64,000 bases of DNA. Source: Scyliorhinus canicula (taxonomy: Eukaryota). The notes under the pieces were generated by a model. The model did no database searches. It was given only the letters and a program-made list of their open reading frames with translations, and had not been told where the DNA came from. This document shows, piece by piece, positions 6,437 through 54,471 of this stretch (within the stretch, counting starts at the first letter, position 1; each line of letters begins with the position of its first letter). Made by a program: the position numbers and the translations under genes. Location: positions 53,629,990 to 53,693,989 of the forward strand of contig NC_052162.1 in assembly GCF_902713615.1 (NCBI RefSeq), in the 5' to 3' direction.

Positions 6437-8003
6437 TGTAAGGATCCTTCTGCTTAAACTCTGTTTGTTTCCTCTTTTTCCCTTTCTTCTATGTTTTGCT
6501 ACTACAATTTTGATCCATGGATGATTAATGGACCTGGGACTTTAATGCAACCTTTGTCGTGAAATGCTGGGCTTTGCTGGTAACCAATAGAGATTGGTTC
6601 TGGTCCTGCTGACATGTTTCCTAGAGTCACAAGGCTGGTTTTCTTGTTTTCACTTTCAATTCTGCAAGCTGGATGCAGGAATCTGACCAATTCACCCCAG
6701 GAATGTCCAGCTAATTTTCAACAAAAGGTCAGAGAACCTGATAACTCTCAATCCAGTAAAGGCAGAATCCAGAATCAGATAATCTCCTCTCTGCAGCATA
6801 AAGGCTGAGGTGAAGCAGAGACTAGAATATGATAGTTCTCTCTGCAAGAGGCTGCTGAGTAGCCAGAGACCTCTACTGGAAAATCTGTGTGTAAGATATA
6901 CTGCTGAGCTGCAAAGAAGAATGTTAAAAGCTGTAGACCAGCTACTTTAAACCACGCTCATAGTGTGAAGAGGGTGCAATGAAGAACTCATCATCTGAAG
7001 CAAGAACTCTTACATTTTCACCTTAACCCTTATTATTTTTCACCCTTTCCCTTCCCCTCTGTGTTTGTCTGTCTCGTGTGTGTGGATAGAGGGTGAGGGG
7101 CAGCTAAGGAGAATTAGGTATTTGTTCCCATTAACTAGTTGTTTTGCTGCATATTTTATATTTGTTCTGGTTATGAATAAACAGTGAATGTGTTTAAACT
7201 TACAAACCTGGTGACTAATTATTGGACAGCCAAGGACCAAAGATCTTGGGCGGGATTCTCCAACCCCCCGCCAGGCTGGAGAATCGCCGGGGGATGGCGT
7301 GAATCCCGCCTCGCCACCCCGACACCGGCTGCCGAATTCTCCGACGCTGGGATTTTGGCGGGGACGGAAATCGCGCACGCCGGTCGGGGGCCGTTGGCAG
7401 CGGCCTCCCGGCCATTCTCCGCTCCGCGATGGGCCGAGCGGCCGCCCATTTTCGCCCGCTGGCGAAAACTATACAAAGTTCTTACCGGCAGGACCTGGCT
7501 CTGCGGGAGGCCTGCAGAGTTCTCAGGAGGGTGCGGGGGGATCTGGCCCTGGGGGGCCCCCACGGTGGCCTGGCCCACAATCGGGGCCCACCGCGGATGG
7601 GCCTGTGCCGTGGGGCACTCTTTCCCTCCGCGCCGGCTGCTGTAAAGCACTGCCATGGCCAGCGCGGAAGAGAAACCCCCTGCGCATGCGCAGGAATCAC
7701 GGCAGCAGTTCTGGGAACACGCTGGCGCTCCTGCGCATGTGCCGGTTGGCACAGCGCCAATCACTCCAGCGCCGGCGTAGTCCCTGAAGATGCGGAGGAT
7801 TCCGCACCTTCCGGGCAGCCCAACGCCAGAGTGTTTCACGCCACTCTTTGGCGCTGGTATGGCCCGCCCACCGGATACCAGAGAATCCCGGCCCTTATGT
7901 ATTTTCAGAAGAATTATTGATTAAATTACTTGTGTTGTCACTTCAGGAAGAGTGGGACTGGAATTGACCATGCACTTCCCATGCACTTCCCATGCATTAT
8001 GTA
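6437..8003. mobile_element. Solo LTR with 4-bp TSD ACTT, itself containing a MITE
   Basis: Starts TGTAAGG at 6437; ACTT at 6433-6436 and 8004-8007. Removing it rejoins the SYCP1-like frame. Internal AATAAA near 7176. The terminal CA is degenerate. Confidence 0.62.
7248..7893. mobile_element. GC-rich Harbinger-type MITE (~646 bp), TSD CTT
   Basis: TIRs GGGCGGGATTCTC / GAGAATCCCGGCC; CTT at 7245-7247 and 7894-7896; repeated subterminal GATTCTCC/GGAGAATC motifs. Confidence 0.88.
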
Positions 8004-8409
8004 ACTTGTTCTTATTTTCCAGTTTTTTCAGCTTATTTTATATTGTCTCATTAATTTCTCCTTTTTCTTCACTTCATTTTGTAAATTTTTGCAAATTCTT
8101 TTCAAGTTTGCTGTCAGTCATTTCACCCCGTTGATTTCACATTTGCCCTAGAGCTTTAATTATTGCTGATTCTTCTATATGTTCAATAGCTACTTGTTTC
8201 TTTTGAAGTCTTTAATTTCTGTGTTTCTTCTGAAATGTATATGTTCTTACTGGATATATGCATTTCACAAATGGAACCTTCATTTCTATTTGTTTTAACT
8301 TCAGCCAAACCCTTTTGGCTTCACTTAGTCAGGTCTGTCTCCGACGTGTTGACTTGTTTCCATTCTACAATTTTCTCATTGCCCTTCACTTTGGTCATTT
8401 CTTGTCTTT

Positions 8410-8690
8410 TGTTGCCCTCTTTCTGGGGTCTTGCATTGCCCTCCATCTGGCATCTTGCACTGCCTTATTTCTGGGGTCTTTTATTGCCCTTCTGGGTTTT
8501 TTCCTTGCCCTTCTGGGGTCTTTCCTTGCCCTCCTTCTGGGTTGCCCTCCCTCTGAGGTCTTCAATTGCCCTATTTTTGGGGTCTTTCATTGCCTCATGG
8601 GGTCTTTCCTTGCCCTCCTTCTGGGGTCTTTCATTGCCCTCGTTCTGGGGTCTTCTATTGCCTCTGTCCTGAGGTCTACCATTCTTTTTG
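8410..8690. repeat. Degenerate ~23-24 bp minisatellite (TTGCCCTCCTTCTGGGGTCTTTC); ~70-bp duplicate segments at ~8165-8235 and ~8690-8760
   Basis: About a dozen imperfect units are visible; ORFs 8235..8672 and 8258..8731 are translations of the repeat. Confidence 0.85.
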
Positions 8691-8820
8691 CTGATTCTTC
8701 TAAATGTTCAATAGTTACTTGTTTCTTTTGAAGACTTTAATTTCTGTATTTCTTTTGAAGTTTTCTTCCTTGAGGTCTTCATTGCTTCTGGACCTTTTTG
8801 GAGTGTTGCCCTCTATCCTG

Positions 8821-8993
8821 CCACAAGTCCTGAAAGACGTGCTTGTTAGGTGATTTGGGCATTACTACTGAAGTTTCCCTCAGTTTACCCGAGCAGGCGC
8901 CTGAGTGTGGCGACTAGGGGATTTTCACAGTAACTTCATTGCAGTGGTTAATGTAAGCCTACTTGTGACACTAATAAAGGTTATTATTATTAT
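8821..8993 (+). mobile_element. 5'-truncated V-SINE, tail type C ((TTA)n)
   Basis: CCACAAGTCCTGAAAGACGTGCTTGTTAGG...GTGGCGACTAGGGGATTTTCACAGTAACTTCATTGCAGTG...AATAAAGGTTATTATTAT; same tail as 14472-14787. Confidence 0.8.
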
Positions 8994-9552: not shown

Positions 9553-11803
9553 TCAGTAAACACAAAAAGGATTTATTGATTAGAATTGTTCAGCAGCCTC
9601 ATGGCTGAAGCTTGCTCCCTACATGTCTCCTGCCTAAGAGAGCTCCACCCCCTGGGGTGATGACTCACTCTGAATCCCAATTGGTCTCCCAAACCAGGTT
9701 TCCTGCTGTGTTGCCCTTAAAGGGGAAATCACAACCTCACCACCCACAGGTCTTTACTTACCCGAGGGCTTCTGCAACATCAGTTAACTCTTCTTCAGCT
9801 GGCTGTTGTCAAAACAACAGCTCGATAAAAACGAAGCTCTTTGGGCCTTGTCATTCAGGTATCGGGATCGGACTCTGCACCCTTGCTGCTCAAAATGAGC
9901 ACACCAAAATTTCTACGATGCTCTTTCTGTAGTAATAATTAGCATTGACTTTAGAGACATACCCACTTAAAAAGAATTGAAGGGTATATAGAACTCAAGG
10001 ATTTGGAGCTGGGAGGAGAAAGGACAAAAAGAAAATCCATTTGAATTTTCCTTCTCGGTGATTGTACCCATGAGGGGAAGTAGCATAGTCCGTCATGCAA
10101 TATTGCTTGTACATTATCTCATCACTGTGACAGCGGTACATTATCATTATCCTCAACCTCTTTGCAAGTTCTAATAAGGTGGACCACACAATTCTCAATC
10201 AAAGCCTTTCTTAATAATTATGAGCTACATTTTCACCCTCGAGTCAGGAGCTTTCGTTGTCAGGGAATAAGTTCAGAGGCAGCCACAGAGGGTTCTGGCT
10301 GTAGAGGCGTGGTCTATTTAAAAGATCCGCCTTGGTGTGGGAGTTTGTGCTAGTTATAATAAAAGCAGAAAGGCCCTCACCCCTCATTACCCCCTCATCC
10401 TCCACAAACTCCCCATGCTCCATCCATGCCACTTCATGCCCCCATAACCCCCAAAGGCTGTCCTGCCTCTGATGCAAAGGTGTGTCCCCAAACAACCCCT
10501 ATGGGTCCCTCATGATCCCCATTCCAAGACATGCCTCCTTAACAAAACTCCACAGTCCCCTATACTTCCCATGCCAAGCTATGACACTTCCATACCCATT
10601 CACCTACAGTATAGAACCAATAAACCCTGAAATGGCAGTCAGATGTGTAAAAATAGCATTAAAGAAACTGTCATGCATTGATAGCTTTCCATTTTATTTT
10701 TTTAAATTCGAACTTCGAACCAGTAAAAGTGTCAATCATCTAGACCTTTTGAAGCATCAAAAACTGAAATTGCAATCATTGAAACCTATTTATCTTGTGC
10801 AACCAAACATTGTGAAATGGACAACATAGATCAGAGAGCCAGAGCTGTCAATCAAGCAATGCTTTTCTTGGGGCTCGGGTATTTCAGTATTCTAATGGAT
10901 AACTGAGCTCTTATCCAATAATAGATCCATCCATCATCTCTCTTGACCCCTCCATTGTCTCTGTGTTATCAGACTGCCTATTTGACTTCAAATGGTGGAT
11001 GAGCCATAATATCCTCTGCAGGCTCTAGCCATCGTTTTCAGCTTCTACCACACATTTATATGAATGTGCAAGTCCAATGAGACTTGTATCAGATGGTGAG
11101 GGAAGCAACAAGATTTTTTAGCATTAAAGTAGTAATATGGAATATGACTTGGATTGCACCACCATTTCGTCATCATTGGTAGGTCAATACTATGGAATTC
11201 CTTACCTTACATCATTGTGGCAGTATTATTACCACAAGGACTTCATACATTCAAGGAAAAGGTCTGTCACCTATTGAGGGCATCTAGAGGTGGGCAATAA
11301 ATATGTATTGCCAGCATTATGTGCATCCCATGAATAAAAGGGGCCTCAGTTGCCAAATTAAGACATCCTCCTGTCAAGATTTACCAAATAAACTAGCTCA
11401 AACCACCATTAGCAACAGACTCCTGAGCACACCCTCCATCATTCGCAACTCTGCACAATTGCAAAGACATTCTCATTGATTCTGTGCAAAACATGTATTG
11501 AGTACTTCAGTGAATGGCTCTGTGAACTTTGTCACAATTCCCTTCTGTTTTTGCTGCCGGAGTATGCTCAGTCAGGTACAGTGTTGTTGTGGTTGACTGG
11601 TGCTTCCTGATTTTTGCCACTCTGTAATGCCTAATTCCACTGCAATTTTGCTCACCTGTAGTGGTCTTTCCTCTGCTACTTCAGTTGTTTTAATAGGCTG
11701 GATTTTCTGCTGGGCTCAGGAAAACCTGACCTGCAGACACTTGAACATTCTGAATTGCATATCGATCTGCATGTGACTTTGCCTGGAATTTTTATCCTTT
11801 TAC

Positions 11804-12143
11804 GGGGCAGCACGGTAGCATGGTGGTTAGCATAAATGCTTCACAGCTCCAGGGTCCCAGGTTCGATTCCCGGCTGGGTCACTGTCTGTGCGGAGTCCGC
11901 ACGTCCTCCCCGTGTGTGCGTGGGTTTCCTCCGGGTGCTCCGGTTTCCTCCCACAGTCCAAAGATGTGCGGGTTAGGTGGATTGGCCGTGCTAAATTGCC
12001 CGTAGTGTCCTAAAAAGTAAGGTTAAGCGGGAGGGGGTTGTTGGGTTACGGGTATGGGTTGAAACGTGGGTTTGAGTAGGGTGATCATGGCTTGGCACAA
12101 CATCGAGGGCCGAAGGGCCTGTTCTGTGCTGTACTGTTCTATG
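11804..12143 (+). mobile_element. HE1-like V-SINE, full length (tail type A)
   Basis: Intact head and V-domain; tail GAGGGCCGAAGGGCCTGTTCTGTGCTGTACTGTTCTATG matches the CR1 LINE 3' end at ~575-632. Confidence 0.92.
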
Positions 12144-13109: not shown

Positions 13110-16100
13110 AGCAGACATGTCACAAGTTTGAATGGTGTCTGAACTAGTTCCAGGTACTTAGTTTGGCTATCAACACTGATCTGGTGTACTTGGCAGGGGG
13201 GAATGGGAGTGAGGCAGCGGCAAGTGCTCAGAGGGATGTTCCAAATACAGGAAGTCTCCTCCATCTGCAGCCATTCTGCCTCTGGTTCTGCCAGCCACCC
13301 CCCACTCTTTCTGCATTTGCTGCCCAGTGATTGAATAGAAGGTTCAGCAGAGCCAAGCCTCCCATGCTCCGCCTTCTCTGTAGGATGCTTTCGCGGATCC
13401 TGAGGTTCTTACCAGCCCACACAAATGCCATGATTACCTTAAAGACGTTGGTGAAGAAGGCTTTGCGGATAAAGATCGGGAAAGATGTGAATATGAAGAA
13501 GAACCTTGATTGCACTTTCATTTTTATTGTCTGCAGCTTCCTGCTAGGGAGAACGGGAGTGTGTTCTACCTCCTCAGGTCTCTCTTTACCTCCTCCACTA
13601 TCTAGACAGGTGCCACTTATGGACTATCTGGATCCCCAGGTATCGGAACTTGGTTTGGGCTGTTCCCATTTCTGCTTCTCCCCACTCGGGCTTCACCAGG
13701 AAGATTTCATTCTTGCTCATGTTAAGATAGTGTCCCAAAAAAGCTCCAAACTCCCTCAGGAATTTCATTTTCTATCCCTTGGTGGCTGGGGGTTTGGAAC
13801 ATAGAGGAGCAGGTCATCCACATAGAGTAAGACTCTGTGCTCTCTGCCTCTCCTCTGGATGCCTCTCCACCCCTTTGCTGAACTGAGCATGATAGTGGCT
13901 TGAATGGCAGGGCGAACAGCAGCGGGGACAATGGGCATTCCTGCCTTGTGCTTCTGTGCAGCCAAAAGGATCCTGTGTTGGTGGTGTTCATCAATACGCT
14001 CGCCATGGGAACACTGTATCGGAGTTTCACCTATGTGGTAAACCCTGGCCCAAACCCAAACTATGCCAGTACCTCCACGAGGTACCTCCATTTGACTCTT
14101 TCGAAACCTTCTCTGCGTCCAGGGAGATGATCAGTTCTGGTGTCTCCTCCACGGGTGAGGTCATGATCACGTTCAGTAGGCGTCTAATGTTCGTCATTAG
14201 CTGTCTACCTTTGACCCCCGTCTGATCTTCTGCGATTACTTTTGGCAAGCAACTCTCCAGTCACCTCGCCAGAGCCTTTGCCAGGACTTTGGCGCCAGTG
14301 TTCAGGAGCGAAATGGATTTGTAAGACTCACACTCCTTTGGGTCCTTGTCCTTTTTAGGGATCAATGATATTGAAGCCTGTGCCAACATGGGCAGCAAGG
14401 CCTCTCTTGACAGCAAGTTGTTGAACATCTCCAACAGATATGGGGCCAGTGCTGCTGGAAACTTTTTATTTGGCGGCACGGTAGCACAGTGGATAGCACT
14501 CTTGCTTCACAGTGCCAGAGTCCAAGGTTCGATTCCCAGCTTGGGTCACTATCTGTACGGAGTCTGCACTTTCTCCCAGTGCCTGTGCGGGTTTCCTCCG
14601 GGTGCTCCGGTTTCCTCCCACAAGTCCTGAAAGACATACTTGTTAGGTGAATTGTACATTCTGAATTCTCCCTTAGTGTACCTGAACAGATGCCGGAGTG
14701 TGGCGACTAGGGACTTTTCATCTTAACTTCATTGCAGTGGCTAAAGTAAGCATACGTGTGACACAAATAAAGATCATTATTATTATTAGAAGTCCACCAG
14801 GAACCCATCTCATCCCGGTGCCTTCCCTGACCCCTGACTGCATGGGCTGCACTCCATGACCTCCTCCAGTCCTAACGGCGCTTCCAGTTCTCTTTTCCTC
14901 CCCACTGCTGGTATGTCCAGCCTGCCCAGGAACTGTTTCATCTTCGAGCCCCTGGGATGTACAGTTCCCGGTAAAAGTTGCAAAGACCCTGTTGATCTCA
15001 TCTGACACTGTGACCCTCTTACCGTTCCCGTCCCTCACCTGTGCTGTCTCCTCATGGCTGCCTGCTTCCTCAGCTGGTGTACCAGTAAGCAGCTGGCTTT
15101 GTCTCCATGCTCATAAACGGTTTCTTGTGTCTGGCAGAGGTGGTTCACTGCTTCTCCCGTGGAGAGCAGGTCAAATTCCAATTGGAGTTTTTTGCTCTCT
15201 GCGAACACTTCCAATATGGAGTTGATCTGTTGTTGCCTGGCACCCTTTCGTAGGTGTCCCTGAGGGTCCAATACACTATTATTTCCCCCTTTATCACCAC
15301 CTTCAGTGCCTCCCAGAATGTGGAGGGTGAGACCTCCCTATTTTGATTGCAGGTTACATTCCCGTCGATGGCTCGTGACTTTTTTGTGCGTTGTTGGCCA
15401 GAAGGGTTGTGTCCAGCCTCCAAGAGGAGTGTTGGGCTGACCCGTCTTCAACCTCAACTCCATGTAGTGTGGCACATGGTCAGAGATAACTAACGCAGAG
15501 CATTCCACCCCAACCACCCTTGGAAGCACCGACTTACCCAAGACAAAGAAGGCGATGCCTTCTGGAGTAGGCTTTCTGGACAGAGGAGAAGAAGGAGAAG
15601 TCCTTCTCCCTCAGGTGGTTGAACCTCCATGGGTCATTGCCACCACCTGCTCCGTGAAGGTGTTTAGTTCTCTTGCCATTCCTGATTTTCCCCCCATTTG
15701 GGGCTGGACCTGTCTGCCACTGGGTTCTGCACACAGTTGAAGTCTCCCCTTATGATTAGTTGTTGGGAGTCGAGGTCAGCGACCGCTGCAGTGGTTTCTT
15801 TAATGAACTCGGCGGCATCCCAGTTTGGAGCGTGTATATTTACAAGTACCACAGGGACCCCCTCTATGGTCCCGCTAACCATTATGTATCTTCCTAATGG
15901 TTGTGTCACCTTGTTCAGTGATGTAAAGGTTGTACATTTGTTAAACAGTATGGCCAATCCCATTTCCCTTGTGTTGAGGCACGTCTTAGATGTCTGTCCC
16001 ACCCAGCTTTTCCTGATCCTCAGCCGGTCCTGCTGTCATGAATGCATCTCCTGAAGGAAGACGATGTTGACCCTGAAGCTTTTGAGATGGATGAAGACTC

Positions 16101-16630: not shown

Positions 16631-17252
16631 TGTTAAAGGCCAGGGTTTAGAGAACCCCAAAGTGTATCATGGCGTTCACCTGACCCATAACTTTTAATAT
16701 ATTGTGGTATGGGAGCACACGGCCCACTCTACAGGTGTGGTACAGCAGAAATGGAAACGTATTTTTTGAAGCAAAACAATGTTTATTCTGTGAACTCAAG
16801 TGAACCTTTTTGAAACATACCGTGAACATCTTAGCAACCATCAATTCAAATACAACCCCCAAAGAATATAACACTAAGTAATCCATAAACTGTCCTTTTA
16901 ACATCCAGAAGAATTAAGAAACACCTTTAATCAGAAGCACATTAGGTTTAAATCACTACTGTTATTAGTTTTAATTCACCAGGATCGATTTACAGTCTTT
17001 AGATTACAGAGAGAGATTCATACACCTTCTGGCTGTGACTGCAGCTATCCAGCTCTGAAAACGAAACTGAAACACACCCGGCAGCAAACAGCCTAAAACG
17101 AAAGTAAAAAGCTGACAGACAGCCCAGCTCCACCCAGTCTCTGACATCACTGCAGTAATAAACACCCATTTCTTAAAGGTACTCTCACTATAGATATTTA
17201 TATACATACCCATTTATAAACACCCATTTCTTAAAGGTATGCTCACATGACA
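16631..17252 (-). repeat. 3' LTR of the Gmr1-like element
   Basis: TGTTAAAGGCC...CACATGACA; carries an internal duplication of ATAAACACCCATTTCTTAAAGGTA. Confidence 0.93.
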
Positions 17253-17610
17253 CCTCCCACCAAGAAAAAAAAGTAAACCATCAAGATGGTTCCATTTTAC
17301 ACCTTTTCACTATCCTTTAAGAAATGCACACAGTAAATATACTTTATTGTTTCAAAAAACAACACTTGCAAACAGGAGTAATAATATAGTCCATTTTTTT
17401 TCTTCTTCCTCCAACTGAAATCCTTCCCGATTGACAGTCTCTTTGAACAAAAAGGTCCTTGCACAATCCGTCCATTTCTCTACGCCTCGGCATTTTTAAA
17501 GTCAGATACTTTAGTTCAATCTGATCAAAAAGTCCCTTGTAATTCTCCAACACAGGAGCATTGGTTATCACAGCTCTCAGGCAGTCAAATGCCTGTTGAA
17601 AGTCCGCTAT

Positions 17611-18455
17611 CTACTGAAATGTTCGACGTTTCTTCAGCACGTCCATCAGTGGAGCAACCACGCTACAAAACCTTTCCACAAATGTTTGATCAAATCCACT
17701 CATGACAAGAAATCGCATTATTTCCCTTCGTCTTGAGGGCATCGGAAACTCCTCAATAACTGTCGGTTTCACATCCCGTGTGAGCAATCGACCCTGTCCA
17801 TTTGTATGGCCAAGGAAAGTGATTTGGGCTTTTCCAAATTCATTTTTGCTAGGTTTATCACCAAATCCCCCTCCTGAAGTCGATCGAATAACTCCATCAG
17901 ATGTTTTAAATGTTCTTTCCATGTCTGGCTGAAAATAACCAGATCGTCAATGTATACCGCACAATTGGGTAATCCTGAAACGACTTTGTTAGTTAATCGT
18001 TGAAATATGGCTGGAGCTTTTTTCATGCCAAATAGCATAACTTTGAATTGGTACATACCATCTGGAGTCACAAAAGCTGAAATCTCCTTCGCCCTTTCGG
18101 GTAAAGGTATCTGCCAGTAACCTTTAAGTAAATCCAGTTTAGAAATAAAAGCTGATTGTCCCACTTTCTCAATGCAATCCTCCAAAAGTGGGATAGGATA
18201 AGAGCCCAGTCTTGTAACTGCATTAATCTTTCTATAGTCCACATACAACCGATGGGTCCTGTCTGGTTTAGGTACCATCATTTTGGGTGAGCTCCATTGG
18301 CTGCAACCCACTTCAATTATGCCATTTTTAAGCATACTGTCAATCTCTTTGTTAACCTGTGCCAATTTTAAAGGGTAAAGTCCATATGGATGTTGTTTGA
18401 TTGGATCAGCCATTCCCACATCTACATCATGTATAGCCATTTTAGTACTTCCCAA
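17611..18455 (-). pseudogene. Reverse transcriptase remnant of the Gmr1-like element (RNase H largely missing)
   Basis: ORFs 17769..18455 and 17611..17922: SQWSSP, VDYRKINAVT, LDLLKGYWQ, FGMKKAPAIFQR, YIDDLVIFS, ITFLGH. Confidence 0.92.
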
Positions 18456-18828
18456 TTTATGTCCACAAACTTGCCCACGTGATATCTTTCAAGTCAGTTC
18501 GTTCTTCCTCTGGAAGGTAACTCAACAATTTAGCTCAATTTTTAAGAACATCCTCGTTTTCCAATTTAATTTGAGGCATGTCAAATTCACAGTCATCTGG
18601 ATTTGGTTCGTCTATTTGAGTTAGATTCATTAAAACCCCTCCTTTTTCTCTCCTTCCCTTTCAAAGTACCTTTTAAGCATATTCACATGACACACTTGGT
18701 GAGTCTTCCTTCTATCTGGTGTATTAAACCACATAATTCACCTCACTTAATTTCCATTCAATCTGATAAGGTCCACAAAACCTAGCTTTTAAAGGTTCAC
18801 CTACCACTGGTAACAATACTAAAACTTT

Positions 18829-19461
18829 GGGCGGAATTCTCCGACCCCCCGCAGGGTCGGGGAATCGCCCGGGACCGGCGTAAATCCCGTACCCACCGTG
18901 GCTGGAATTCTCCGCCACCCGGAATCGGCGGGAGCGGGAATCGCGCCCCGCCGATCGGCGGGCCCCCCGCGGCGATTCTCCGGCCCATGTTGGGCCGAAG
19001 TCCTGCCGCTGACAGGCCTCTCCCGCCGACATAGTTTAAACCACATCTGTGCCGGCGGGAGCAGGCGGCGCGAGCGAGCCCCGGGGTCCTGGGGGGAACG
19101 CGGGGCAATCAGACCCCGGGGGTGCCCCCACGGTGGCCTGGCCCGTGATCAGGGCCCACCGATCGGCGGACAGGCCAGTGCCGTGGGGGCACTCTTTTTC
19201 TTCCGTGGTCGCCACGGCCTCCACCATGGCGGATGTGGAAGAGACCCCCTCCACCGCACATGCGCCTGTGGTGACGTCAGCAGCCGCTAATGCTACCGGC
19301 GCATGCGCGGACTCACGCCAACCAGCGAAGGCCTTTCAGCCAGCCCTGGCGCCAGGCAGCATGGTGCCAAAGGCAGTCGGGGGAGCGGGAGCCACTCCGG
19401 CGCGGGCCTAGCCCCTAGCCCCGGCACCCCCCGCCCCGCCGGGTAGGGGAGAACTTTGCCC
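18829..19461. mobile_element. GC-rich Harbinger-type MITE (633 bp) inserted in the Gypsy pol, TSD TTT
   Basis: TIRs GGGCGGAATTCTCC / GGAGAACTTTGCCC; TTT at 18826-18828 and 19462-19464. Excision restores VRSFASGDK-VLVLLPVVGEPLKARF on the minus strand. Confidence 0.93.
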
Positions 19462-19549
19462 TTTATCTCCACTGGCAAAACTACGAACTTTGGATTTCTT
19501 GTCCGCGGACCCGTTTCATCACATTTTGCGCAACTTTCAAATGTTGTCT

Positions 19550-20330
19550 AGCCAATTCACCTGCTCGATTTAATCATTCCCTAAAATTTGACACGTAACC
19601 CAATAATGTAATTTCCGATTTCTCACTCGCCAATTTTTCCTGAATCAATTTAAGTGGTCCTCTTACCTCATGACCAAAAAATTAGTTCAAAAGGACTAAA
19701 TTTGGTTGACTCATTCGATGCACCCCTAATTGCAAACAGTACGAATGGAATTCCTTTATTCCAATCCTCTGGATAATCTTGACAATAAGCCCTCAACATT
19801 TTCTTTAATGTCTGATGCCACCTTTTTAATGCTCCCTGTGATTCTGGATGGTATGCAGTTGATTTAAATTGTTTTATTCCTAAGCTATCCATAACTTCTT
19901 TGAATAACCTTGAGGTAAAATTTGATCCTTGATCCGATTGTATTTCTGTGGGTAGTCCATATATCTAGTAAAGAATTTAAGTAACTCCTCCACAATCTTT
20001 TTAGCTGTAATATTACGTACTGGAATGGCCTCTGGAAACCTAGTAGACACATCCATTATAGTGAAAAGATATTGATTCCCACTTTTTGTTTCAGGAAGCA
20101 GTCCGACGCAATCAATTAGGACCATTGTAAAAGGTTCCTCAAATGCTGGAATGGGAATTAAGGGCACTGGTTTTATCACTGCTTGAGGTTTCCCTATCAC
20201 TTGACATGTGTGAAATGATTGACAAAATTTAACGACATCTTTATGTAGTCCAGGCCAATAAAAATGGTTCTGGACTTTAGCTTGAGTTTTCCTTATTCCC
20301 AAATGACCTCCTATTGGTACCTTATGTGCA
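19550..20330 (-). pseudogene. Integrase remnant located upstream of RT
   Basis: ORFs 19880..20302 and 19668..19892: zinc-binding region (HFYWPGL..CQSFHTCQ) and rve core (IDCVG, AYHPESQGALKRWHQTLK, FSPFELIF). Confidence 0.92.
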
Positions 20331-22517
20331 ACTCACAATACCCTACCGGTAATACGACTTGATGAACTTCTGCCCACTTTTCATCCGCCTGCATTTTCTC
20401 ATCAAGACATTACTTTTACGGTAATACACTGGTATACACTCAGATTCCTCTTCCTGTTTTGTACATGCTTTCTGATACATCCATTTTATTTCTACATCTT
20501 TCTGTTGTAACTCCATCAATTTTCCTGAATTATAAAATCCGCCTCATCCTGCACCTGTTCTTTTTCTTTTTCAACCATCTGATCAAAAATTGTTTCTGAT
20601 AATTGCACTTCAACTTCATCTTCACTCTCTGATTTCTCCTCTTGTCTTAACCTGTGACTTTGCTACCTTGTTACTACACAATCTGGAAAAATGCCAGAAT
20701 ATTCGTCCTTCAACACTTCAGTTGTCTGATTTTCCACTGGCTTATCAAGTACAGTAGGCATCAGTCCCACCTGCGATCCAGCTATATCATTACCTAAGAT
20801 AAACTGTATTCCTGGACAACATAGTTTCTCTATTACTCCTACTACCACTTCACCACTATTCACTGGACTTTCCAACCTTACCTTATATAATGAAACACTA
20901 CTTCTTTCACCCTGAATTCCACCTATTACCACCTTTTTTGGCAACATTCTTGCCAAACTACATAACTCCTCATCTCTTACCATTAAAGATTGACTAGCTC
21001 CCGGATCTCTTAAAATTATGACTTCTTTACCTGCTCCTCCTGATACACATGAGTAAACTTTACCCACACAAGTAAATTCTTTAAAGAGATCTGACCCCTT
21101 CTTATCAATCACCTCTTTATCAGGCTGTACAACCTTTTTCACCTCCTTCGCTTCACATGGGCTTTCCTTTACCACTTTAACAAACCCCACTGTCTTATCC
21201 TGTTTTACCACATCAGCCTTTCCAGTGCTTTTCTTCAACCACCAACAGTGACTTTACATGGCCTAGTTTATTACAGTGAAAACATTTGAAACTTTTCATT
21301 TATTTTCTACCCTCCTGGATTTCTTTTTTAATCTGAGGTAATCTCCTTATTATCTCCCATCAGATCACCTTTACCTTTACCTCTTGAGTATTCCTCATGT
21401 CCCCAGTTTCTATCCCTCACATGCTGAAACTGAAGTCGGAAACCAAGCTTTGATTTATGAACTAATTCATAATCATCTGCCATTTCTGCTGCTAATCTCG
21501 CAGTTTTAACCCTCTGCTCTTCCACATGAGTTATCACTGCATCAGGAATTGAATTTTTAAACTCCTCCAAAAATATAATTTCTCTGAGAGCTTCATATGT
21601 TTGGTCTATTTTCAAAGCCCTCATCACCTATCAAAATTACTCTGTTTGATCCTTTCAAACTCCATGTATGTTTGACCAAATTATTTTCTTAAATTTCTAA
21701 ACCTTTGCCTGTAGGCTTCAGGCACTAGTTCATATGCACCTAAGATGGATTTTTTCACCTCCTCATATGACCCAGATACCTCCTCCGGTAGTGATGCAAA
21801 CAAGTCCTACCTATCAGCTTTGTTTCAATCAGTAATACCCACATGTCCTGTGGCCATTTCATTTGTTTAGCCACCTTCTCAAATGAAATGAAAAAGGCTT
21901 CTATATCCTTTGCAATACTTTGACATATTTAAATAGATCCCCACCAAGCCTTCGACTATGACAATCCTTCTCACTATCCTCATCACTATCTTCCAACTAT
22001 CATTTTAACTGACTGTCCTGTTTCATGGCCATTTTCTGAAGTTCAAACTCTCTCTCTTTATCTTTTTCCCTGATCTGTATCTCCCTTTCTCTTTATTTTT
22101 CTTCTCTATCTCTTTCGTATTAAAGCTGCTTTAATTCTTTCTCATGTTCCATTTGTTTAAGTTATAACTGAATTTTTGCCATTTCCAATGAGTAAAACTA
22201 TATCTCAGGCAACTTTAAATGCTTAGCCGCCACTATAATTACCTCACCTTTTCGCATTTTGTCAGGTAATGTTAACTGCAATGTTTTTGCCAAATGTAAC
22301 AGTCTGCTTTTAGTCTCTGTCCGTAAGGTACTGCGTGTGACCGTCTCCACCCCCAAAATCTTCTGAGCCTCTGAACGAGCTCTTGTCCACAACACAACCC
22401 TACTTAAACTAGAATACCATACCTGAAAAGCAACCACAATATGCTCACCCCTCACTGTCTTTAAGTTCACTAAACCAATCCAGTAGATAGACTTTTATTC
22501 CCCCTGAGCCCCCAATT

Positions 22518-32873: not shown

Positions 32874-32906
<33 letters not shown>

Positions 32907-37630: not shown

Positions 37631-37935
37631 GAACCGCGCCATCGGGAACTCGGGCCATCGGAGATGGAGAATCGCGGAGGTCCCAGAGAATACCAGGTCA
37701 GTCCCGCTAATGATATGCAAATGGTGTTAACTGAACGTGCGTTCCGGACCGGATTGACACCGCTGTCAAGGTGACGGAGAATTGCGATTTAGTGTCAAAT
37801 CGCCACCTGCCACGATTTCGGCATTGGAACCGATTCTCCGCCCAATCGCGTTTCCTGATTTCGGCATTAGCCAATGGAGAATCCTGCCCACAGTATGCCA
37901 AATGGAGAATAGCGGCCCATTTGTGCAGACATGTG

Positions 37936-38455
37936 GGGCGAGATTCTCCGCAAATGCGGAGAATCGTAAAGGCTGCCGTTGGACAGGCCGTGACCCACGT
38001 CAGCCTTCACGCCCACTTCCGGGGCCAATTCTCCCCCCGGGCAGGGCTAGGAGCACGGCCCCGTGCGTCACGGCGGCGCGGCCTTGACGACGGTCATCAA
38101 GGCCGCACGTCAAGCGTCACGCCGGCTGACGCATGCGCAATTGGCGTCTTTCCCTCAGCCACCCCGCAAGATGTGACGGCTTGATCTTGCGGGGCGGCAG
38201 AGGGAAAAGAGTGCGTCCATTACGGACGCACGGCCCGCTATCGGTGTGCACCGATCGTGGGCCTATGCCCCCCTTGGCACGGCCGTGGTACTGCCATGCC
38301 AATCGGGCCCCCAGATGCCCCAAACGGGCATCTGGCACCCGTTTCACGACGGCAGCGAGCAGGTGTGTTTGCTACCGTGTTGAAACAGGCGTGAAGGCCC
38401 GGCCGCTCGGCCCATCGGCCTCGGAGAATCACCACTCGCCGTAAAAAACGCGATT
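37936..38455. mobile_element. GC-rich Harbinger-type MITE, right end lost at the L1 insertion
   Basis: Left TIR GGGCGAGATTCTCC; internal similarity to 53188-53832 (TTGATCTTGCGGGGC..AGGGAAAAGAGTGCGTC). Confidence 0.75.
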
Positions 38456-38608
38456 CGGGACTTCCGGTTGTGGCTATGCGGAGCTAAGGCGCACGTTCGG
38501 CAGCTCCCGCTATTTAGGGACTTTTGGGCCGTTTCGAGGGCCCCAAACGCCGCTGTTTCTACGCATCCCGGTGGGGGAAGGTGCCTGGAAGAACTTGCCC
38601 CACACTAT

Positions 38609-39625: not shown

Positions 39626-40279
39626 GGCCTGGGGACATACTTTGGCCGGCGTTGTTTCCGCTGTGGCTGTTTCGTTCCAACTGTTTCAACTTTTTTAACT
39701 TCGACATGTGTGTTATGTATGATGGTTTTCTGTTTGCTCTGGTTACAGGTGGGTTTGTTTGTTGGGCATGATTGTGGGTTAGGTGGGGACTGTTGGGGGT
39801 TTGTTTTCTATATGTTCTCTTCTGTACGGGGCTGGGGATTGAGGGGAAACTGGATTTTGGGGAGCTGCGTCAGAAGGGTGGGGTGTGGCAGTGTGAAAGC
39901 GCGGGCTTTCCTCTGGTTTCCCGCGTTGCGGGGCGGGGGGTGGAGCTTGCGGTGGGGGCGGGGCCTCGATGGGTCTTCTTTCACGCGCTGCAGCAATGCC
40001 AAGGAGGTGTGGCAAGAGGGGGATGACCCCATGCCGGGAGGGGATAGGTTTTGGCGGGAGCTGCCGGGGTCAGCAGAAGTCAGCTGACTCACGGAAGTAC
40101 CATGGAGGGTGCGTCGCGGCTAGGAGGGGTCCTAGCCTTGGAGGGGGGGGGGTACCGGGTTGCTGCTGGAACGACTAGGAAGGAGCCGATAGGGGCTGGG
40201 GGAGAAGAGGAGAGGCGCTATCGCCATGGGGAACGGGTCAAGCGGGGTGTGCTGGCCTGGGGCGAACATCTGCCAAGCT

Positions 40280-42193
40280 ATGGCTAGTCGGCGGGCGAGG
40301 GGGGCGGGTTGCCCTCTGATCTGGCTGATTACCTGGAACGTGAGGGGGCTGAACGGGCCGGTTAAGAGAACCAGGGTGTTCTCCCATCTAAGGGGGTTGA
40401 AGGCGGACGTGGCTATGCTCCAGGAGACCCACCTGAAGGTGGCGGACCAGGTCCGTCTGAGGAAGGGGTGGGTGGGGCAGGTTTATCATTCAGGATTGGA
40501 CGCGAAGAACCGGGGGGTGGCGATTCTAGTGGGGAAGGGGGTGGCGTTTGAGGTGGCTGAGGTGGTGTCAGACAAGGAGGGCAGATATATCATGGTGAGG
40601 GGTAGGCTGCAGGGAGAGAAGGTGGTGCTGGTGAACGTATATGCCCCGAATTGGGATGATGCTGGCTTCATGAGGCGATTGTTGGGCCGCATCCCGGACC
40701 TGGAGGCAGGGGGCCTGATCATGGGGGGAGACTTTAACACAGTGCTGGATCCCACACTGGACCGGTCCAGTTCAAGGACGGGTAGGAGACCGGCGGCGGC
40801 CAAGGTGCTGAGGGGATACATGGACCAGATGGGAGGGGTGGATCCCTGGAGGTTTGGGAGACCGAGAGCGCAGGAGTATTCCTTTTTCTCTCATGTCCAT
40901 AGGATTTATTCCCGGATAGACTTTTTTGTCCTGAGCAGGGGATTGATTCCGATGGTGCAGGATGCCGAGTACTCGGCCATAGCGATTTCGGACCATGCCC
41001 CGCACTGGGTTGATCTGGAGATGGGAGAGGCGCGGGACCAGCGCCCGCTTTGGCGCCTGGATGTGGGGATGCTGGCGGAGGAGGAGGTGTGTAAGAGGGT
41101 TCAGAGAAGTATTGAGGGGTATCCGGATACCAATGATACGGGGGAGGTCCAGGTGGGGATGGTCTGGGAGGCTCTGAAAGCAGTGATCCGGGGGGAGCTG
41201 ATCTCCATCCGGGCCCACAGGGAAAGGAGGGAGAGGAAGGAGAGGGAGAGACTGGTGGGAGAGCTTCTGGAAGTGGACAGGAGATATGCGGAGGCACCAG
41301 AGGAAGGGTTGTTGGGAGAACGGCGCAGGTTGCAGGCCAATTTTGACTTGTTGACCACCAGAAAGGTGGAGACACAGTGGAGGAGGTCGCAGGGCGCGGT
41401 ATATGAGTATGGAGAGAAGGCGAGCAGGATGTTGGCGCATCAGCTCCGTAGGCGAGATGCGGCTAGGGAAATTGGGGGAGTGAAGGATGGGGGTGGAAAT
41501 GTAGTGCAGAAGGGGACAGAAGTAAACGGGGTCTTTAGGGACTTATACGAGGGATTGTACCGGTCGGAACCTCCGAGGGGGAGAGAGGGGATGGAGAGCT
41601 TCATGAACAGGCTATGTTTCCCAAGGGTTCAAGAGAGGGTGGTAGAGGGGCTGGGGGTGCCGATAGAGTTGGAGGAGCTAGTCAGGGGGATCGGGCAAAT
41701 GCAGTCAGGTAAGGCCCCGGGGCCGGACGGGTTCCCGGCAGAATTTTACAAAAAATATGCGGACCTGGTGGGTCCCCTGCTGGTGCGAACTTTCAATGAG
41801 GCGTGGGAGGGGGGGGCTTTGCCCTCGCCGATGTCGCGGGCACTGATCTCTTTGATCCTAAAACGGGATATGGACCCCTTGCAGTGCGGATCATATAGGC
41901 CTATCTCGCTCCTTAACGTAGACGCTAAGTTGCTAGCGAAGATCCTGGCTACCAGGATAGAGGATTGTGTGCCAGAGGTAATTCATGAAGATCAGACAGG
42001 ATTTGTCAAGGGGCGGCAGCTCAACACGAATGTGCGGAGACTGCTCAATGTTATCATGATGCCGGCAGTGGAGGGGGAGGCGGAGATAGTGGTGGCGCTG
42101 GACGCAGAGAAATCGTTTGATAGAGTTGATGGGGGTACCTGTGGGAGGTGCTGGAGAGGTTTGGATTTGGGGAGGGATTCATCAAATGGGTGA
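40280..42193 (+). CDS. L1-type ORF2: APE endonuclease and N-terminal RT; frameshift near 42130, truncated
   Basis: ITWNVRGLN, LQETH, NVYAPN, GGDFN, SRIDFF, ISDH, GKAPGPDGF, YRPISLLNVDAK, LDAEKSFDRV. Confidence 0.92.
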   Translation: MASRRARGAGCPLIWLITWNVRGLNGPVKRTRVFSHLRGLKADVAMLQETHLKVADQVRLRKGWVGQVYHSGLDAKNRGVAILVGKGVAFEVAEVVSDKEGRYIMVRGRLQGEKVVLVNVYAPNWDDAGFMRRLLGRIPDLEAGGLIMGGDFNTVLDPTLDRSSSRTGRRPAAAKVLRGYMDQMGGVDPWRFGRPRAQEYSFFSHVHRIYSRIDFFVLSRGLIPMVQDAEYSAIAISDHAPHWVDLEMGEARDQRPLWRLDVGMLAEEEVCKRVQRSIEGYPDTNDTGEVQVGMVWEALKAVIRGELISIRAHRERRERKERERLVGELLEVDRRYAEAPEEGLLGERRRLQANFDLLTTRKVETQWRRSQGAVYEYGEKASRMLAHQLRRRDAAREIGGVKDGGGNVVQKGTEVNGVFRDLYEGLYRSEPPRGREGMESFMNRLCFPRVQERVVEGLGVPIELEELVRGIGQMQSGKAPGPDGFPAEFYKKYADLVGPLLVRTFNEAWEGGALPSPMSRALISLILKRDMDPLQCGSYRPISLLNVDAKLLAKILATRIEDCVPEVIHEDQTGFVKGRQLNTNVRRLLNVIMMPAVEGEAEIVVALDAEKSFDRVDGGTCGRCWRGLDLGRDSSNG

Positions 42194-46053: not shown

Positions 46054-46961
46054 TGGCTGGAAGATGAAGTTTGTTGCAGACATTTAAGGCTGGTAATTCA
46101 CAGTTAAACAACCTGTTACGACATGATTTATAGACCTGACATGAGACACAACACTGGAAACCAGAAGGTGAACAATAAAACTTTGCAGTCTCAGTCCTGC
46201 AAGCAGAAGATTATTTGCAGAGGGTTTTCTTTTTACTTTTCAATTTTTAAATGCTTTTCTTTCTTTTCCTTGCTGTTTCTTTTTTTCCCTTTTCCAATCC
46301 ACATATTCCTTTTCTCTCAGTATTTCTCTTTCTGTGTCTAAGTGGACACCAATTCATTCTATTTTCTTCCTTGTCAGTTCTGTTTCTTCCTCTATGCTTT
46401 AATATAATTGGTTGAAGAGATAGACTAATGTTCGGGGATCCCAGACATCCTGGTGACCTTGTGTTCCCTGCAACGTTTGGCAAAAGTAATGCTATCTGAG
46501 GATGCGGATTAAAAATCCAACACTCGATGCTTGCCATGAGATGCCCCACCCCAGCAGAGCTGGATCAAGAAATGCTCCGTCCTTGAATATCAGGCTAGAT
46601 ATTCCTGTTGCCAAAAACAAGAGGTAAATTCTTAGAGCATATGTCTAACATTCCCTTGTGAACAATTTAAAAAGATGAATTGGTCTATTTATTTTAAACT
46701 GATAATGTTAGCTTGACCCAGATTTTCCATCAATGTTGAGATTAACAATTTAAGTCCCAAATCTTTGCCATCTATAACACCAATCTCACCATTATTAAAT
46801 TTCTCCAAATATTTCTGGCCTCCTAATTAACATTCAGTGCAGTTAATCTAAAAGCTGAAGAAACCCTACATTCACCATCCGGAGTTGCAGGGAGATTTAA
46901 CAGAATGGAAATGTAATCTAAATATGTTTTTGTACTTAAATTGTCAGGCTTGTTTGCAAAT

Positions 46962-47132
46962 GGGTGGCATTGTAGCACAGTGGTTAGCACTGTTGTTTCA
47001 CAGCGCCAGGGTCCCAGGTTCGATTCCTGGCTTGGTCACTGTCTGTGCGGAGTCTGCACTTTCTCCCCATGTCTGCGTGGGTTTCCTCCTGGTGCTCCAG
47101 TTTCCTCTCACAAGTCCCAAAAGACGTGCTGC
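46962..47132 (+). mobile_element. V-SINE 5' part, abutting a MITE right-end fragment (47133-47385)
   Basis: Head and V-domain to CACAAGTCCCAAAAGACGTGCTG, then GC-rich sequence ending GGAGAGTTCCGTCC. Confidence 0.75.
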
Positions 47133-48754
47133 TAGACCAGGTCCCGCTGGTAAGGAACTAACTCCAATTTACGCCGGCGGGACCGGCATAGAACGGGTGG
47201 GACTTTGGCCCACCTTGGGCCGGAGAATCCAAACAGCCCCGGACCCCGCCATTCTCTGAGGCGGGTGGCGTGACTCACACCGGGCCGGTTTTTGTGGGGC
47301 GAGCGAATTTGGAGGACGGCGGGGGTGGGATTCACGCGACCCCCGGCGATTAACCCACCCGGCGGGGGGTCGGAGAGTTCCGTCCATTAAGTTTTAAAAT
47401 TGACCTGAGTTTTACATTTTAAATATGATACAGATCCTACAGATAGCTGAGAATGTAAAGAGAGTCTTGGACAGAATTGGCTGCAGGGGGTTTATCTGAG
47501 GAACAATGGAACTCTTCCTTGTGCTTCCAGACAAGATAATTCTAAACAAATCTAAAGACTGATCACCATCTCTGGTAAAGACAAAGGAACATAATGGCTA
47601 TCTAGGTATAAGACACAAGGTGTAATTGCCCAAACCTGTAAGTACACTTCACTTCAAATAAAAGACAGGGGTTAAAATCTAGCTGAGAGAATTTCCCAGG
47701 GTCTTTCTGTGTGTGCAAGCGATGAGAAAAGCAGCTGGGTGTTTGCCACATTGAAGGTGATATTTTAACCAAGGCAGGGCCCCTGCAGAAAGTCAGCTTC
47801 TGCAGGAACACCCAAAACTCTCTCTCCAACTGTGAAAGTCAATTAGCCAACAGAAGGACTGCAACTGAAACAATATCTGAAATCTCTCTACTGAACTACA
47901 GAACACCTGAACCGAGGAATCAACCACTGGAAACAACCTCTGTCATCTGGAACACATCATCATCTATTCCTCACAACTCAAGGACTGTTCCTTATAACTT
48001 TTTATTTATACTTACTTACTATTGGACTCAGATCTTATTTGCTATCCGTATGAACGTAGATGGATCTGTTTTACCATTTCTCCTTACCTTTTTAATTACT
48101 TACTGCATCTTACCTCAAGAAAGGCTGGCTAAATTGGCCCCTTTTTAAACATAACTATTGGGTCTGGAAAAGTTGACCAAGGGGAAGGGAAACTTGTTAT
48201 CTTAAACCAGAGGGTGGGTCAAATAAAGACACAGAGCCACTGTTTGTACAATTTGAGGGGTATCAAAGTGTTTGAAGAAGTATATTTGGTAGATTTTCCC
48301 TTTTTTTTTTCTCTTTGTCTTTGCTGACCCTGGAGATTTCAAATGCTGATTATGTGTTAATAAGTATGAACTTGTTTGAGTGATATCCCTCTTTCTACTG
48401 TTTTATTCCAAAAAGATTACTGGCTCACTAAAGTAACACAAGAAGGAATTTCAGTTGAACATATTGAGCATTGAGTATTGCCCCACAGCATGATTTTAAA
48501 GCTACAATGTTTTTGACAGCTTAGAACAATTGTGGATATTACCATAGTGATAGTAACTAGGCAACAGTATCTACATTGTAAGGCTCAGCATCAAGAATCC
48601 ACCTTCATGGTGAACAATTGAAAATAAATGAGAAAATCTTTTCCCATATCTTTGATATTTGATTTCTCTCATTTCTGTTCCCTGTTTAAGTTTTATGTGA
48701 TGATATTATTTGAAGGAACAATTTGTTGGAAATACCAAGTCAAAAGGCTCTCAT

Positions 48755-48960: not shown

Positions 48961-48991
48961 CAACATCACAAAAAATACTCATCGCCTGACA

Positions 48992-49472: not shown

Positions 49473-49477
49473 AACTC

Positions 49478-51953: not shown

Positions 51954-52481
51954 CTTGTAAGAGGCCTCGTGTGTGATTCACGACGCTCAAAAGGTCTCGC
52001 AAAATTCAACGGGATTTCGTGAGGCATCGCGATCTGGATCTAACACTCGCTGAGCGAGATCCAGATCTGCAAATTTAAAGCTAATTTAAATATGTGTTTC
52101 CCATATTCACCAGTGGCCCGGGAATCACCGGCCTAGACTGGTAGGCCTCGTCAGGGTGTGGTTTATTACTGGTCCACACAAACGTAGATCAGTCGTAACA
52201 GCACATGGGGGACCACAGGCAATCAGAGATAGGGCACCCTGGCACTCTCTCTGGCACCTCAGCATTTTGGCACTGTCACCTGGGCATCCTGGCAGAGATG
52301 ATTCTGCACCATCTCTTGCTCCTGCACATGTTTGGATACTCCAACTGCACCAGCAGGTACTGGATGCTCGGCGACAACCCCTCATGTTGTTCCTGGCTCT
52401 GCAACTGCATCTCCATAATCGATGGGACCATCTGTTCCAGAAGCCCAAAACCCGTCTGGACGGCAGCTGGTTTAAAAAAAA

Positions 52482-52690
52482 CATTTAATTCATTTTACGG
52501 GATGTGGGCATTGCTGGTTAGGCTAGCATCTATTGCCCATCCCTAGCTGCCCTTCAGAAAATGGTGTTGAGTTGCCTTCTTGAACAGCTGCAGTTCTTAA
52601 GATGTAGGTATACAAACTTCACTGTAAGGGAGAGCGTTCCAGGATGTTGCCCCAGCGGCAGTGAAGGAACGACGATATATTTCCAAGTTG
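52482..52690 (-). mobile_element. LINE-type 3' tail fragment; related degenerate copy on + at ~11170-11340
   Basis: Minus strand GCAGCTGTTCAAGAAGGCAACTCAACACC...GGGATGGGCAATAGATGC...CACATCCCGTAAAATGAATTAAA. Confidence 0.6.
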
Positions 52691-53020
52691 GGGGGGGGGG
52701 GGGGGGGGGAGCACATAGCACACACAGTGTCAGACAGTCAGATGCATGCAGCTCATGGGGTGGGTAACTGGTGGCCTCAGTGACCGGGCACCAGGCCATG
52801 GTGGCTGGTATGGGTATCGGCATGTGGCACAGGCTGAGGGTTCAGCCGCCTTCCAAGTGAGGGGGTGGTGGTTACGGGTGTGTGAGACAGGAGTTGGTGC
52901 TAAGGGCACAGTGCAGCTTACTCACCCTGGCCACCCGAGGCGTTTGTGCAGTTTCATCTGGCTTATCGGTCCGGAAGGTGTTGCCCATGGCACTGACCAC
53001 CTCGGCCACCTGTGTCCAGG

Positions 53021-54471
53021 TGTTGCTCGTTTTGATCCCAACAATGTCGCCAATACTGTTACTAATATTAATGATAATATTGGTGAACCCAAGCCTTATA
53101 TTGATCAAATGACCATACAACCAGTAAGTTAGTTCAAAAGATGGTTTATTTACAAACACAAGAGTTACCTCAACATGCAAACATAATGGGCGCAATTCTC
53201 CCAAAGGGAGACAAAGTGCCGACGCCGGAGTGAAAACCGGAGTGTTTCACTCCGGCGTCGGAGGCCGCTCCTCACCCCCTATTCTCCCACCCCCAGGGGG
53301 CTAGGAGCGGCGGCGCATCAATCTCGTGGGCCAGGCCTTGACGCCGCGTCAAAGCGGCGCCGCCTGAATGACGCGGCCGGCAGCGCCTGAATGACGTCAC
53401 CCGCGCATGCGCGGTTGCCGTCCTCCCCTCCGCTGCCCCGCAAGACATGGAGGATTGATCTTGCGGGGCAGCGGAGGGAAAAGAGTGCGTCTTTCAGAGA
53501 CTCCGGCCCGATGATCGGTGGGCAGCGATCGTGGGCCAGACCCCTCCTGAGAACCCCCCTGGTGCTCGATCCTCCCTCCGCTCCACACAGGCCCCACACA
53601 CAGCGGTCGCGCGCTGTTCACACCGGCAGCGACCAGGTGTGGTCGGTGCCGGCGTGAACCGGTCGTATTAGGCAGGCCACTCGGCCCATTTTCCGAGCGG
53701 CCTGTCGCAAAACACGACACGCCGTTTTGGGGGGGTGGGAGAATCGCGTACGGGTGCCAGGGCGGCATGGCATGAATCGCCCGGCACTCCCGCGATTCTC
53801 CCACCCGGCGTGGGGGTCGGAGAATTGCGCCCAATATCTACGACGAGTTAAACTACACCTATCAGCTACAATAACCTATTCTTAGCTTCAGGGCGACCGG
53901 CACTGTGCAAATGGATAAGGCCTTTATCTGGATTTCACTTGGCTGGTTCGAAGAAAGTGGCTCTGTCTCTGCTGGGCTCATCTATCAGGTAGCGATCGTT
54001 GGTCTTGAACTTGGCTGGCTGTTCCGGCTACAGTTGGGCTGGCACAGGCTGGATCCAAAAGAGACAGAACACATGGCTGTGCTCTCTTTTATCCCTCTGG
54101 GATTTTGCGCTCTTTGGGGCGGTCTTTAACCTTCAACCCAATAGTTTGACAGGGCTCTGATCACTGTCTTCGATTTCGGCCAATAACGGGGCGGGTGCCT
54201 TGGTGGCTGGTGGGGTCCTTAGAGGTCATTGACCTTGGCAGTTGGGCTTTCTGAGTCAAGGGAGTGGCGCCGATCAGTCTGTGGCTGTACCGGTTTCTTG
54301 ATTGGAGTTCTATTGTCCTGGGAAAATGGGTCATTAAAATGCAAACGAGCAGGGTTTCGATCAGGCTTGGTTACTTGTGTTTCAAATACACATAGGCTCT
54401 GTATCTGTCTGAGTCCTGGGTTGGCCATAATTCCCTTGGTCCTTTGCAGGTGGCCATCTTAGATGGCTACA
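53021..54471 (-). mobile_element. Solo LTR, TSD CAGG, containing a MITE
   Basis: Plus strand TGTTGCTCG...GATGGCTACA; CAGG at 53017-53020 and 54472-54475; AATAAA on the minus strand near 53150; splits the Myb exon. Confidence 0.85.
53188..53832. mobile_element. GC-rich Harbinger-type MITE (645 bp), perfect 14-bp TIR, TSD AAT
   Basis: GGGCGCAATTCTCC / GGAGAATTGCGCCC; AAT at 53185-53187 and 53833-53835. Confidence 0.93.

Follow-up and report, generated by a model that had tools for sequence, protein, structure and literature searches.

The present analysis concerns a 64-kb stretch of catshark (Scyliorhinus canicula) DNA, positions 53,629,990 to 53,693,989 of contig NC_052162.1 (the window, within which positions are counted from the first nucleotide), and the apparent PIF/Harbinger transposons inserted in it, together with the target sequences they occupy. 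The host context is intron DNA. Four complete elements of about 640 bp, referred to as c1 to c4, are bounded by a common terminal inverted repeat (TIR), GGGCNGNATTCTCC, and by target-site duplications (TSDs) of 3 bp. On the plus strand lie c1 (7248-7893, 646 bp; TSD CTT at 7245-7247 and 7894-7896; flanks AGAT-ctt and ctt-ATGT), c2 (18829-19461, 633 bp; TSD TTT; AAAC-ttt and ttt-ATCT), which is nested in a Gypsy-type long terminal repeat (LTR) element, and c3 (34055-34708, 654 bp; TSD CAG; GAAT-cag and cag-ATGT), nested in a decayed Harbinger element described below. The fourth, c4 (53188-53832, minus strand, 645 bp; TSD AAT; ACAT-aat and aat-ATCT), is inverted relative to the others and belongs to a diverged subfamily. 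Three partial copies were also recognized: a truncated c4-like one (37936-38435, minus strand; end at 37936, flank ACAT-gtg), which is followed immediately past its truncated end by a long interspersed nuclear element (LINE); the first ~275 bp of the ~640-bp family at 47085-47385 (minus strand; end at 47385, flank ACTT-aat read toward the element); and the beginning of a c1-like copy cut off by the edge of the window (63965-64000, plus strand; flank AGTC-aat). The sites of the four complete elements, with their flanks and differing triplets, and that of the truncated copy at 37936 are present in the sequence as the original prediction had described them.

The same prediction treated the ~640-bp elements as one family. 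This view holds for the TIR and for some internal blocks, which c1 to c4 have in common; however, identity in aligned columns is 86% between c2 and c3, 67-69% between c1 and either of these, and only 52-56% between c4 and the others, and the four are three subfamilies rather than close copies of one family. The core heptamer of the TIR (GATTCTC) recurs within the ~640-bp copies 5.6 times per kb, as compared to 0.5 per kb outside them. When the open reading frames (ORFs) of three of the four complete copies, c1, c2 and c3, were compared, no protein-level similarity between them was found.

The ~640-bp copies (7248-7893, 18829-19461, 34055-34708, 53188-53832, 37936-38435 and 47085-47385) also resemble CpG islands, with a GC content of 64-71% and a CpG observed/expected ratio of 0.85-1.01, against 0.39 in the rest of the window, and this appearance persists although the complete copies differ from each other by 14-48%. 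The NRF1-type palindrome GCGCATGCGC, with one mismatch allowed, is matched eight times in the window, always within these copies, and at 19272 and 53392 the palindrome is adjoined by the cAMP-response element (CRE) TGACGTCA. Judging from such sequence features, the copies may act as dispersed, unmethylated, promoter-like modules.

A second group with the same TIR is formed by elements of about 190 bp, three of which lie on the plus strand of the window: B1 (1742-1939; inward flanks TAAA-cat and ACTG-cat, the TSD register being ambiguous by 1 bp), B2 (5949-6120; TCAC-aaa and AGAC-tga, the two TSD copies of which differ) and B3 (23327-23511; AAAC-aat and AGAA-act, with AAT and AGT as TSD copies that differ by one mismatch). 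In B1 and B3, an additional 18-bp TIR-like unit, a tandemly duplicated terminal motif, is located outside the end that matches the terminus of B2. Two orphan ends on the minus strand complete the inventory: a perfect TIR match (GGGCTGGATTCTCC) at 32074-32087 with the flank GCAC-att, and a TIR-like sequence with one mismatch at 59635-59648 with the flank AGTA-tcc, for which neither a partner end nor family homology was found within the window.

The largest element with this TIR occupies 32529-37889 (5361 bp; transposase remnant on the minus strand), has the TSD ACA and lies, as originally predicted, between ATTT-aca and aca-GTAT. Its terminal inverted regions, about 240 bp long, begin with the same 14 bp as the MITEs (miniature inverted-repeat transposable elements, as the short copies may be called: 633-654 bp or about 190 bp in length, with the TIR of an element bearing DDE_Tnp_4 sequences). 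Between these ends, a frameshifted Harbinger transposase remnant (35171-36072, minus strand) consists of an N-terminal piece and three fragments of the DDE_Tnp_4 profile, which has 158 positions. The fragments at 35434-35607, 35268-35441 and 35171-35398 correspond to profile positions 23-61, 78-117 and 118-157, with E-values of 0.0027, 0.00046 and 0.057, respectively; they are colinear on the minus strand, and their scores total 51.6 bits against a cut-off of 24.8. The N-terminal piece (35611-36072) resembles clusters with DUF8040, Plant_tran and DDE_Tnp_4 (scores 0.93-0.96). Pfam gave no hits on the long ORF pieces of the element, and the DDE_Tnp_4 matches came only from shorter minus-strand pieces; the later queries stopped at 37285 and resumed at 37559. 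Because of the colinear fragments and the likeness of the N-terminal piece, we identify this element as a decayed, frameshifted and dead autonomous Harbinger. A solo terminal region at 29568-29795 (plus strand, flank TATC-ttg) represents a second copy of the same family.

Assignment of the MITEs and the large element to the PIF/Harbinger (PHIS) superfamily, proposed in the original prediction, is thus supported at the level of sequence, since their TIR is shared by the 5.4-kb element, in which the DDE_Tnp_4 remnants lie. The features of that superfamily found here are a DDE_Tnp_4-type (IS5-like) transposase, a 3-bp TSD flanking TIRs that start with G or A, and a preference for target sequence beyond the TSD. 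All copies are presumably immobile now; those in the window look dead, with frameshifts in the transposase and one copy truncated next to the LINE.

Perfect 3-bp direct repeats directly abut the TIR ends in all five complete elements (c1 to c4 and the decayed Harbinger), which indicates that the element boundaries are sound. The duplicated triplet is not a fixed one, in agreement with the original claim: among about 14 insertion sites, none has TWA and only one (CAG, in c3) has CWG. At the same time, it does not behave as the free 3-bp spacer that had been postulated, because AAT/ATT, the commonest TSD, accounts for 5 of the ~14 sites, compared with roughly 7% expected from base composition, and the central base is A or T in 17 of 22 ends. 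The remaining nine sites are not ANT, and the triplets seen among them include CTT, TTT, CAG, ACA, GTG, TTG and TCC. The triplet is therefore variable, with its outer two bases relaxed, but it is not free.

The 22 ends on which the flank statistics are based were chosen as credible by family homology (nhmmer). They comprise the 8 ends of c1 to c4, 3 of the partial ~640-bp copies, 2 of the 5.4-kb element, the solo end at 29568, 6 of the ~190-bp MITEs and the 2 orphans (32087 and 59648). In the whole window, the TIR consensus occurs 14 times with at most one mismatch (0.3 expected by chance) and 35 times with at most two (5.9 expected). Seven of the 2-mismatch hits, which have no family support (16725, 31374, 31930, 32432, 37917, 60542 and 62795), were omitted, and eight further TIR-like matches inside the MITEs are subterminal repeats, which served as negative controls.

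With positions numbered outward from the element end, so that the TSD occupies -3 to -1, the eight half-sites of c1 to c4 have A at -7 in seven cases, A at -5 in all eight and T at -4 in seven. The best sum of information over four positions is 5.22 bits, a value reached by none of 20,000 random sets, whether these were taken at random positions or 5' of any GGG, the best 4-position stretch being chosen afterwards. The bias was found again in the 14 ends outside c1 to c4: A is present at -7 in 10 of them (p 5e-4) and at -5 in 8 (p 0.014), with A or T at -5 in all 14, and C or T at -4 in 10 (p 0.09). The mean number of matches to A-S-A-Y per half-site in these ends is 2.64, versus 1.5 for random positions (p 5e-5). 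On the other hand, T at -4 was seen in only 3 of the 14, C being more frequent, and G or C at -6 in 9, neither of which is significant. When all 22 ends were compared with the composition of their own outer flanks, the bias was apparent at three positions: -7 was A in 17 of them (p 3e-6), -5 was A or T in every one (22/22, p 6e-6), and -4 was a pyrimidine in 18 (p 0.003). The ratio of A to T, 17:3 at -7 and 16:6 at -5, with the former in particular, speaks for strand symmetry and not mere AT richness. No flank bias was present at the eight internal TIR-like repeats.

Of the half-site ASAT proposed originally, the A residues at -7 and -5 thus replicate, the S at -6 and the T at -4 do not. As the latter base is more often C in the other ends, the general motif is A-n-A-Y / NNN / R-T-n-T, and ASAT/ATST, the narrower form, characterizes the ~640-bp group at most. 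After small-sample correction, the information amounts to about 4 bits per half-site in c1 to c4 and to about 2.5 bits when all 22 ends are taken together. Unoccupied sites with the strict ASAT-NNN-ATST sequence occur twice in the window; the relaxed motif is found once per 1.1 kb.

The most probable explanation, to which we assign a probability of about 0.72, is that these elements are fossils of a catshark PIF/Harbinger (PHIS) lineage, with MITEs mobilised in trans and a weakly palindromic 11-bp target preference. In such a lineage, a single autonomous element, now decayed, would be accompanied by three or more groups of non-coding MITEs. One transposase could have moved all the groups in trans, presumably with a Myb-like partner, since they share the 14-bp end and subterminal copies of the GATTCTC core. 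By analogy to what is known of the superfamily, the Myb-like protein would bind the ends and recruit the DDE transposase, and a dimeric complex would make a 3-bp staggered cut. The complex would favor the site A-n-A-Y / N-W-N / R-T-n-T, in which, on both sides, a pyrimidine/purine pair lies 2 bases from the middle of the TSD and A/T lies 3 and 5 bases from it, the ~640-bp group possibly favoring ASAT / NNN / ATST. Location of the most informative positions 3 and 5 bases from the centre would fit a symmetric dimer contacting or bending the flanks, and the target might be read by direct contacts or by way of DNA shape. A dimeric enzyme is also the usual explanation for symmetric preferences in the flanks of a staggered cut among other DDE transposases and integrases with weakly palindromic targets, although these represent different superfamilies, with other TSD lengths and motifs.

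Several points weigh against this interpretation. The sample comes from a single 64-kb window, in which the 22 credible ends represent only about 14 independent insertions, and the set of ends was curated by one of us. In the all-inclusive set, in which the seven unsupported 2-mismatch hits are retained (and with them about 5 chance hits), the bias is weaker, with A at -7 in 12 of 20 ends (p 0.0015) and at -5 in 11 of 20 (p 0.006), though it is not abolished. The behavior of positions -4 and -6 outside c1 to c4 belongs here as well. Each of the DDE_Tnp_4 fragments taken singly scores below the Pfam cut-off of 24.8 bits, and no Myb, SANT or MADF match was obtained among about 40 ORF pieces scanned in 32529-37889, where decay or introns could hide it. 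Finally, no paralogous or orthologous empty site that would verify a boundary directly was found; BLAST and local alignment of the reconstructed empty sites revealed no paralogous sequence that spans an insertion point.

One could suppose that the boundaries were drawn incorrectly, and that the flanking 4-mers belong to the inverted repeat as its outer margin, with the TSD lying elsewhere, or that all copies sit in one repeated host sequence, a palindromic flank being formally an inverted repeat. We regard this as extremely unlikely, because the perfect 3-bp repeats abut GGGC...GCCC in all five complete elements, an accident with a chance of 1/64 in each case, no similarity of flanks extends beyond 7 bp, and the copies sit in different surroundings (in unique intron DNA, inside a Gypsy-type element and inside the Harbinger). 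Accidental similarity among a few sites selected by eye would be a natural objection to the original prediction, which used only 4-5 sites and defined its motif after they had been viewed. Nevertheless, it is very improbable in the light of the random sets, in which the post-hoc choice of four positions was allowed for, of the replication on 14 other ends and of the lack of the motif at the internal repeats.

Two further possibilities concern the way in which the target is recognized. The original prediction envisaged a strict bipartite palindrome, ASAT-NNN-ATST, with a truly free 3-bp spacer, resembling an interrupted restriction site and providing targeting of high specificity. Indeed, c1 and c4, two of the four complete MITEs, lie in perfect sites of this kind, the unoccupied motif is rare in the window, and A at -5 and T at -4 are nearly invariant in c1 to c4. 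However, c2, c3, the Harbinger and most of the sibling ends deviate at 1-3 of the 4 half-site positions, so that only 2 of the 5 TSD-validated insertions have the perfect palindrome; two of its positions fail in the replication set, the spacer is biased, and the corrected information is too low for restriction-site-like specificity. Hence, we consider such strict recognition improbable. Similarly doubtful seems a purely indirect read-out, in which the transposase would prefer an AT-rich, bendable DNA shape with no base-specific contact. AT richness of the local flanks (A 0.285 and T 0.295 at -30 to -9), the complete exclusion of G and C from -5 and the mostly A or T centre of the TSD are in favor of this mechanism, but the A:T ratios at -7 and -5 reveal a strand-specific bias, and -4 is a pyrimidine in 18 of the 22 ends.

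The bias in favor of the 11-bp palindromic target is thus real, and its strand symmetry and presence outside the TSD agree with the prediction. It is, however, a modest form of a preference known for the superfamily and not a new DNA-targeting system, as had been suggested, because an extended palindromic preference is already a hallmark of these elements (PMC2836001, PMC3016246). Insertion preference beyond the 3-bp TSD was described in all characterised PIF/Harbinger members, with a preferred target of 9 bp for plant and 15 bp for vertebrate elements (PMC2836001). In zebrafish, Harbinger3_DR (CWG type, NuwaI group) integrates into the palindromic consensus AAACACCWGGTCTTT (PMC3016246). In both systems the TSD, 3 bp long and with A or T in the middle, lies within an extended palindrome, and the likeness noted originally stands: the published zebrafish consensus AAACAC-CWG-GTCTTT (PMC3016246) has the flanks ACAC/GTCT, which fit the shark A-n-A-Y / R-T-n-T at every informative position. 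There are also differences. The outer TSD bases, C and G in Harbinger3_DR, are relaxed in the shark, where CWG was seen at one site and AAT/ATT prevails; the shark ~640-bp group prefers T over C beside the TSD; and the outer A/T-rich positions of the 15-bp zebrafish consensus are not evident in the shark set, save for a weak A at -9.

In plants, the PIF and mPing/Ping elements, to which the Tourist MITEs are related, similarly combine MITEs with an autonomous element (a two-gene one in their case) that has the same ends, and they produce a 3-bp TSD, their insertion preference spanning 3 bp on each side of it (PMC2836001). Unlike these elements, whose TSD is TTA/TAA, the shark elements provide no example of TWA, and the plant TIR motif G(N)5GTT (PMC2213677) is absent here. 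Han et al. (2015) distinguished groups of PHIS elements by their TSDs: TWA (PIF/Harbinger strict), CWG (NuwaI), ANT (Pangu), C|TNA|G (NuwaII), AT (ISL2EU) and none (Spy, within AAATTT) (PMC4482050). The shark TSD set fits none of these cleanly, which is its unusual feature. Its commonest triplets, AAT/ATT, are of the ANT type seen in the Pangu group (PMC4482050), but most shark TSDs are not ANT; assignment to NuwaII, ISL2EU or Spy does not fit either, the shark TSDs being 3 bp long, variable and not TNA with C and G flanks. It is possible, and we put it forward only tentatively, that the shark lineage represents a target class of its own, additional to the six groups defined by TSD, in which base-specific reading is mainly of the flanks, at 3 and 5 bases from the TSD centre, and the triplet is a loose N-W-N with an AAT/ATT bias. 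If so, a flank code like that of Harbinger3_DR would suggest that the flank and the TSD can be read independently of each other, and that reading of the flank is the ancestral state among Harbingers of vertebrates.

What is new is modest: the lineage is from a shark, its triplet is relaxed, and its flank code is in common with zebrafish. Should this hold genome-wide, a superfamily that is subdivided by TSD sequence would gain a shark Harbinger lineage whose TSD is non-canonical and constrained only loosely. This would bear on the reported absence of PHIS elements from sharks in one survey (PMC4482050), and on a later one in which Harbingers were undetected in the elephant shark and analysis of other cartilaginous fish was called for (PMC9179366). 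The flank preference of Harbinger3_DR would then be common to distant vertebrates, and the motif would be useful for annotation of shark repeats and for studies on target choice by transposases. The present evidence does not point to a programmable or highly specific integration system.

Other repeats in the window are partly associated with the elements discussed above. The Gypsy-type LTR retrotransposon in which c2 resides extends from 16804 to 23131, with LTRs at 16804-17247 and 22689-23131 that are 90-93% alike. Its reverse transcriptase (17769-18455) and integrase (19880-20302) are encoded on the minus strand, and c2 is nested between both genes; this nesting may bound the age of the c2 insertion. 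The LINE, which is L1-like and occupies 38468-42193, starts just past the truncated end of the MITE copy at 37936-38435 and contains a 385-amino-acid ORF with no Pfam hit and a 655-amino-acid ORF with endonuclease and reverse-transcriptase domains. A protein search with its ORF2 (40226-42193) returned only L1 elements of teleosts, about 46% identical, besides one ray protein, and no catshark loci.

A scan of metagenomes for the TIR with adjoining subterminal bases gave three contigs, none with homology to the family by nhmmer, and we take them to be chance matches. In contig AAUQ01032391.1, AAAC-AAT, in line with the flank motif of the shark, stands before a perfect TIR-like 21-mer (1119-1139); with no further homology to the MITE family, this is probably a chance match. 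Among the remaining features of the window, a minus-strand ORF at 6175-6351 looks coiled-coil-like, and a family of repeats resembling short interspersed nuclear elements, with a conserved tail, is represented at 3165-3385, 11796-12142, 14494-14622, 37271-37616, 46953-47173 and 54707-55048. The part of the window between 5800 and 8100 was matched in sequencing runs of one species from four studies and, partly (0.13 of sampled words), in those of a related species.

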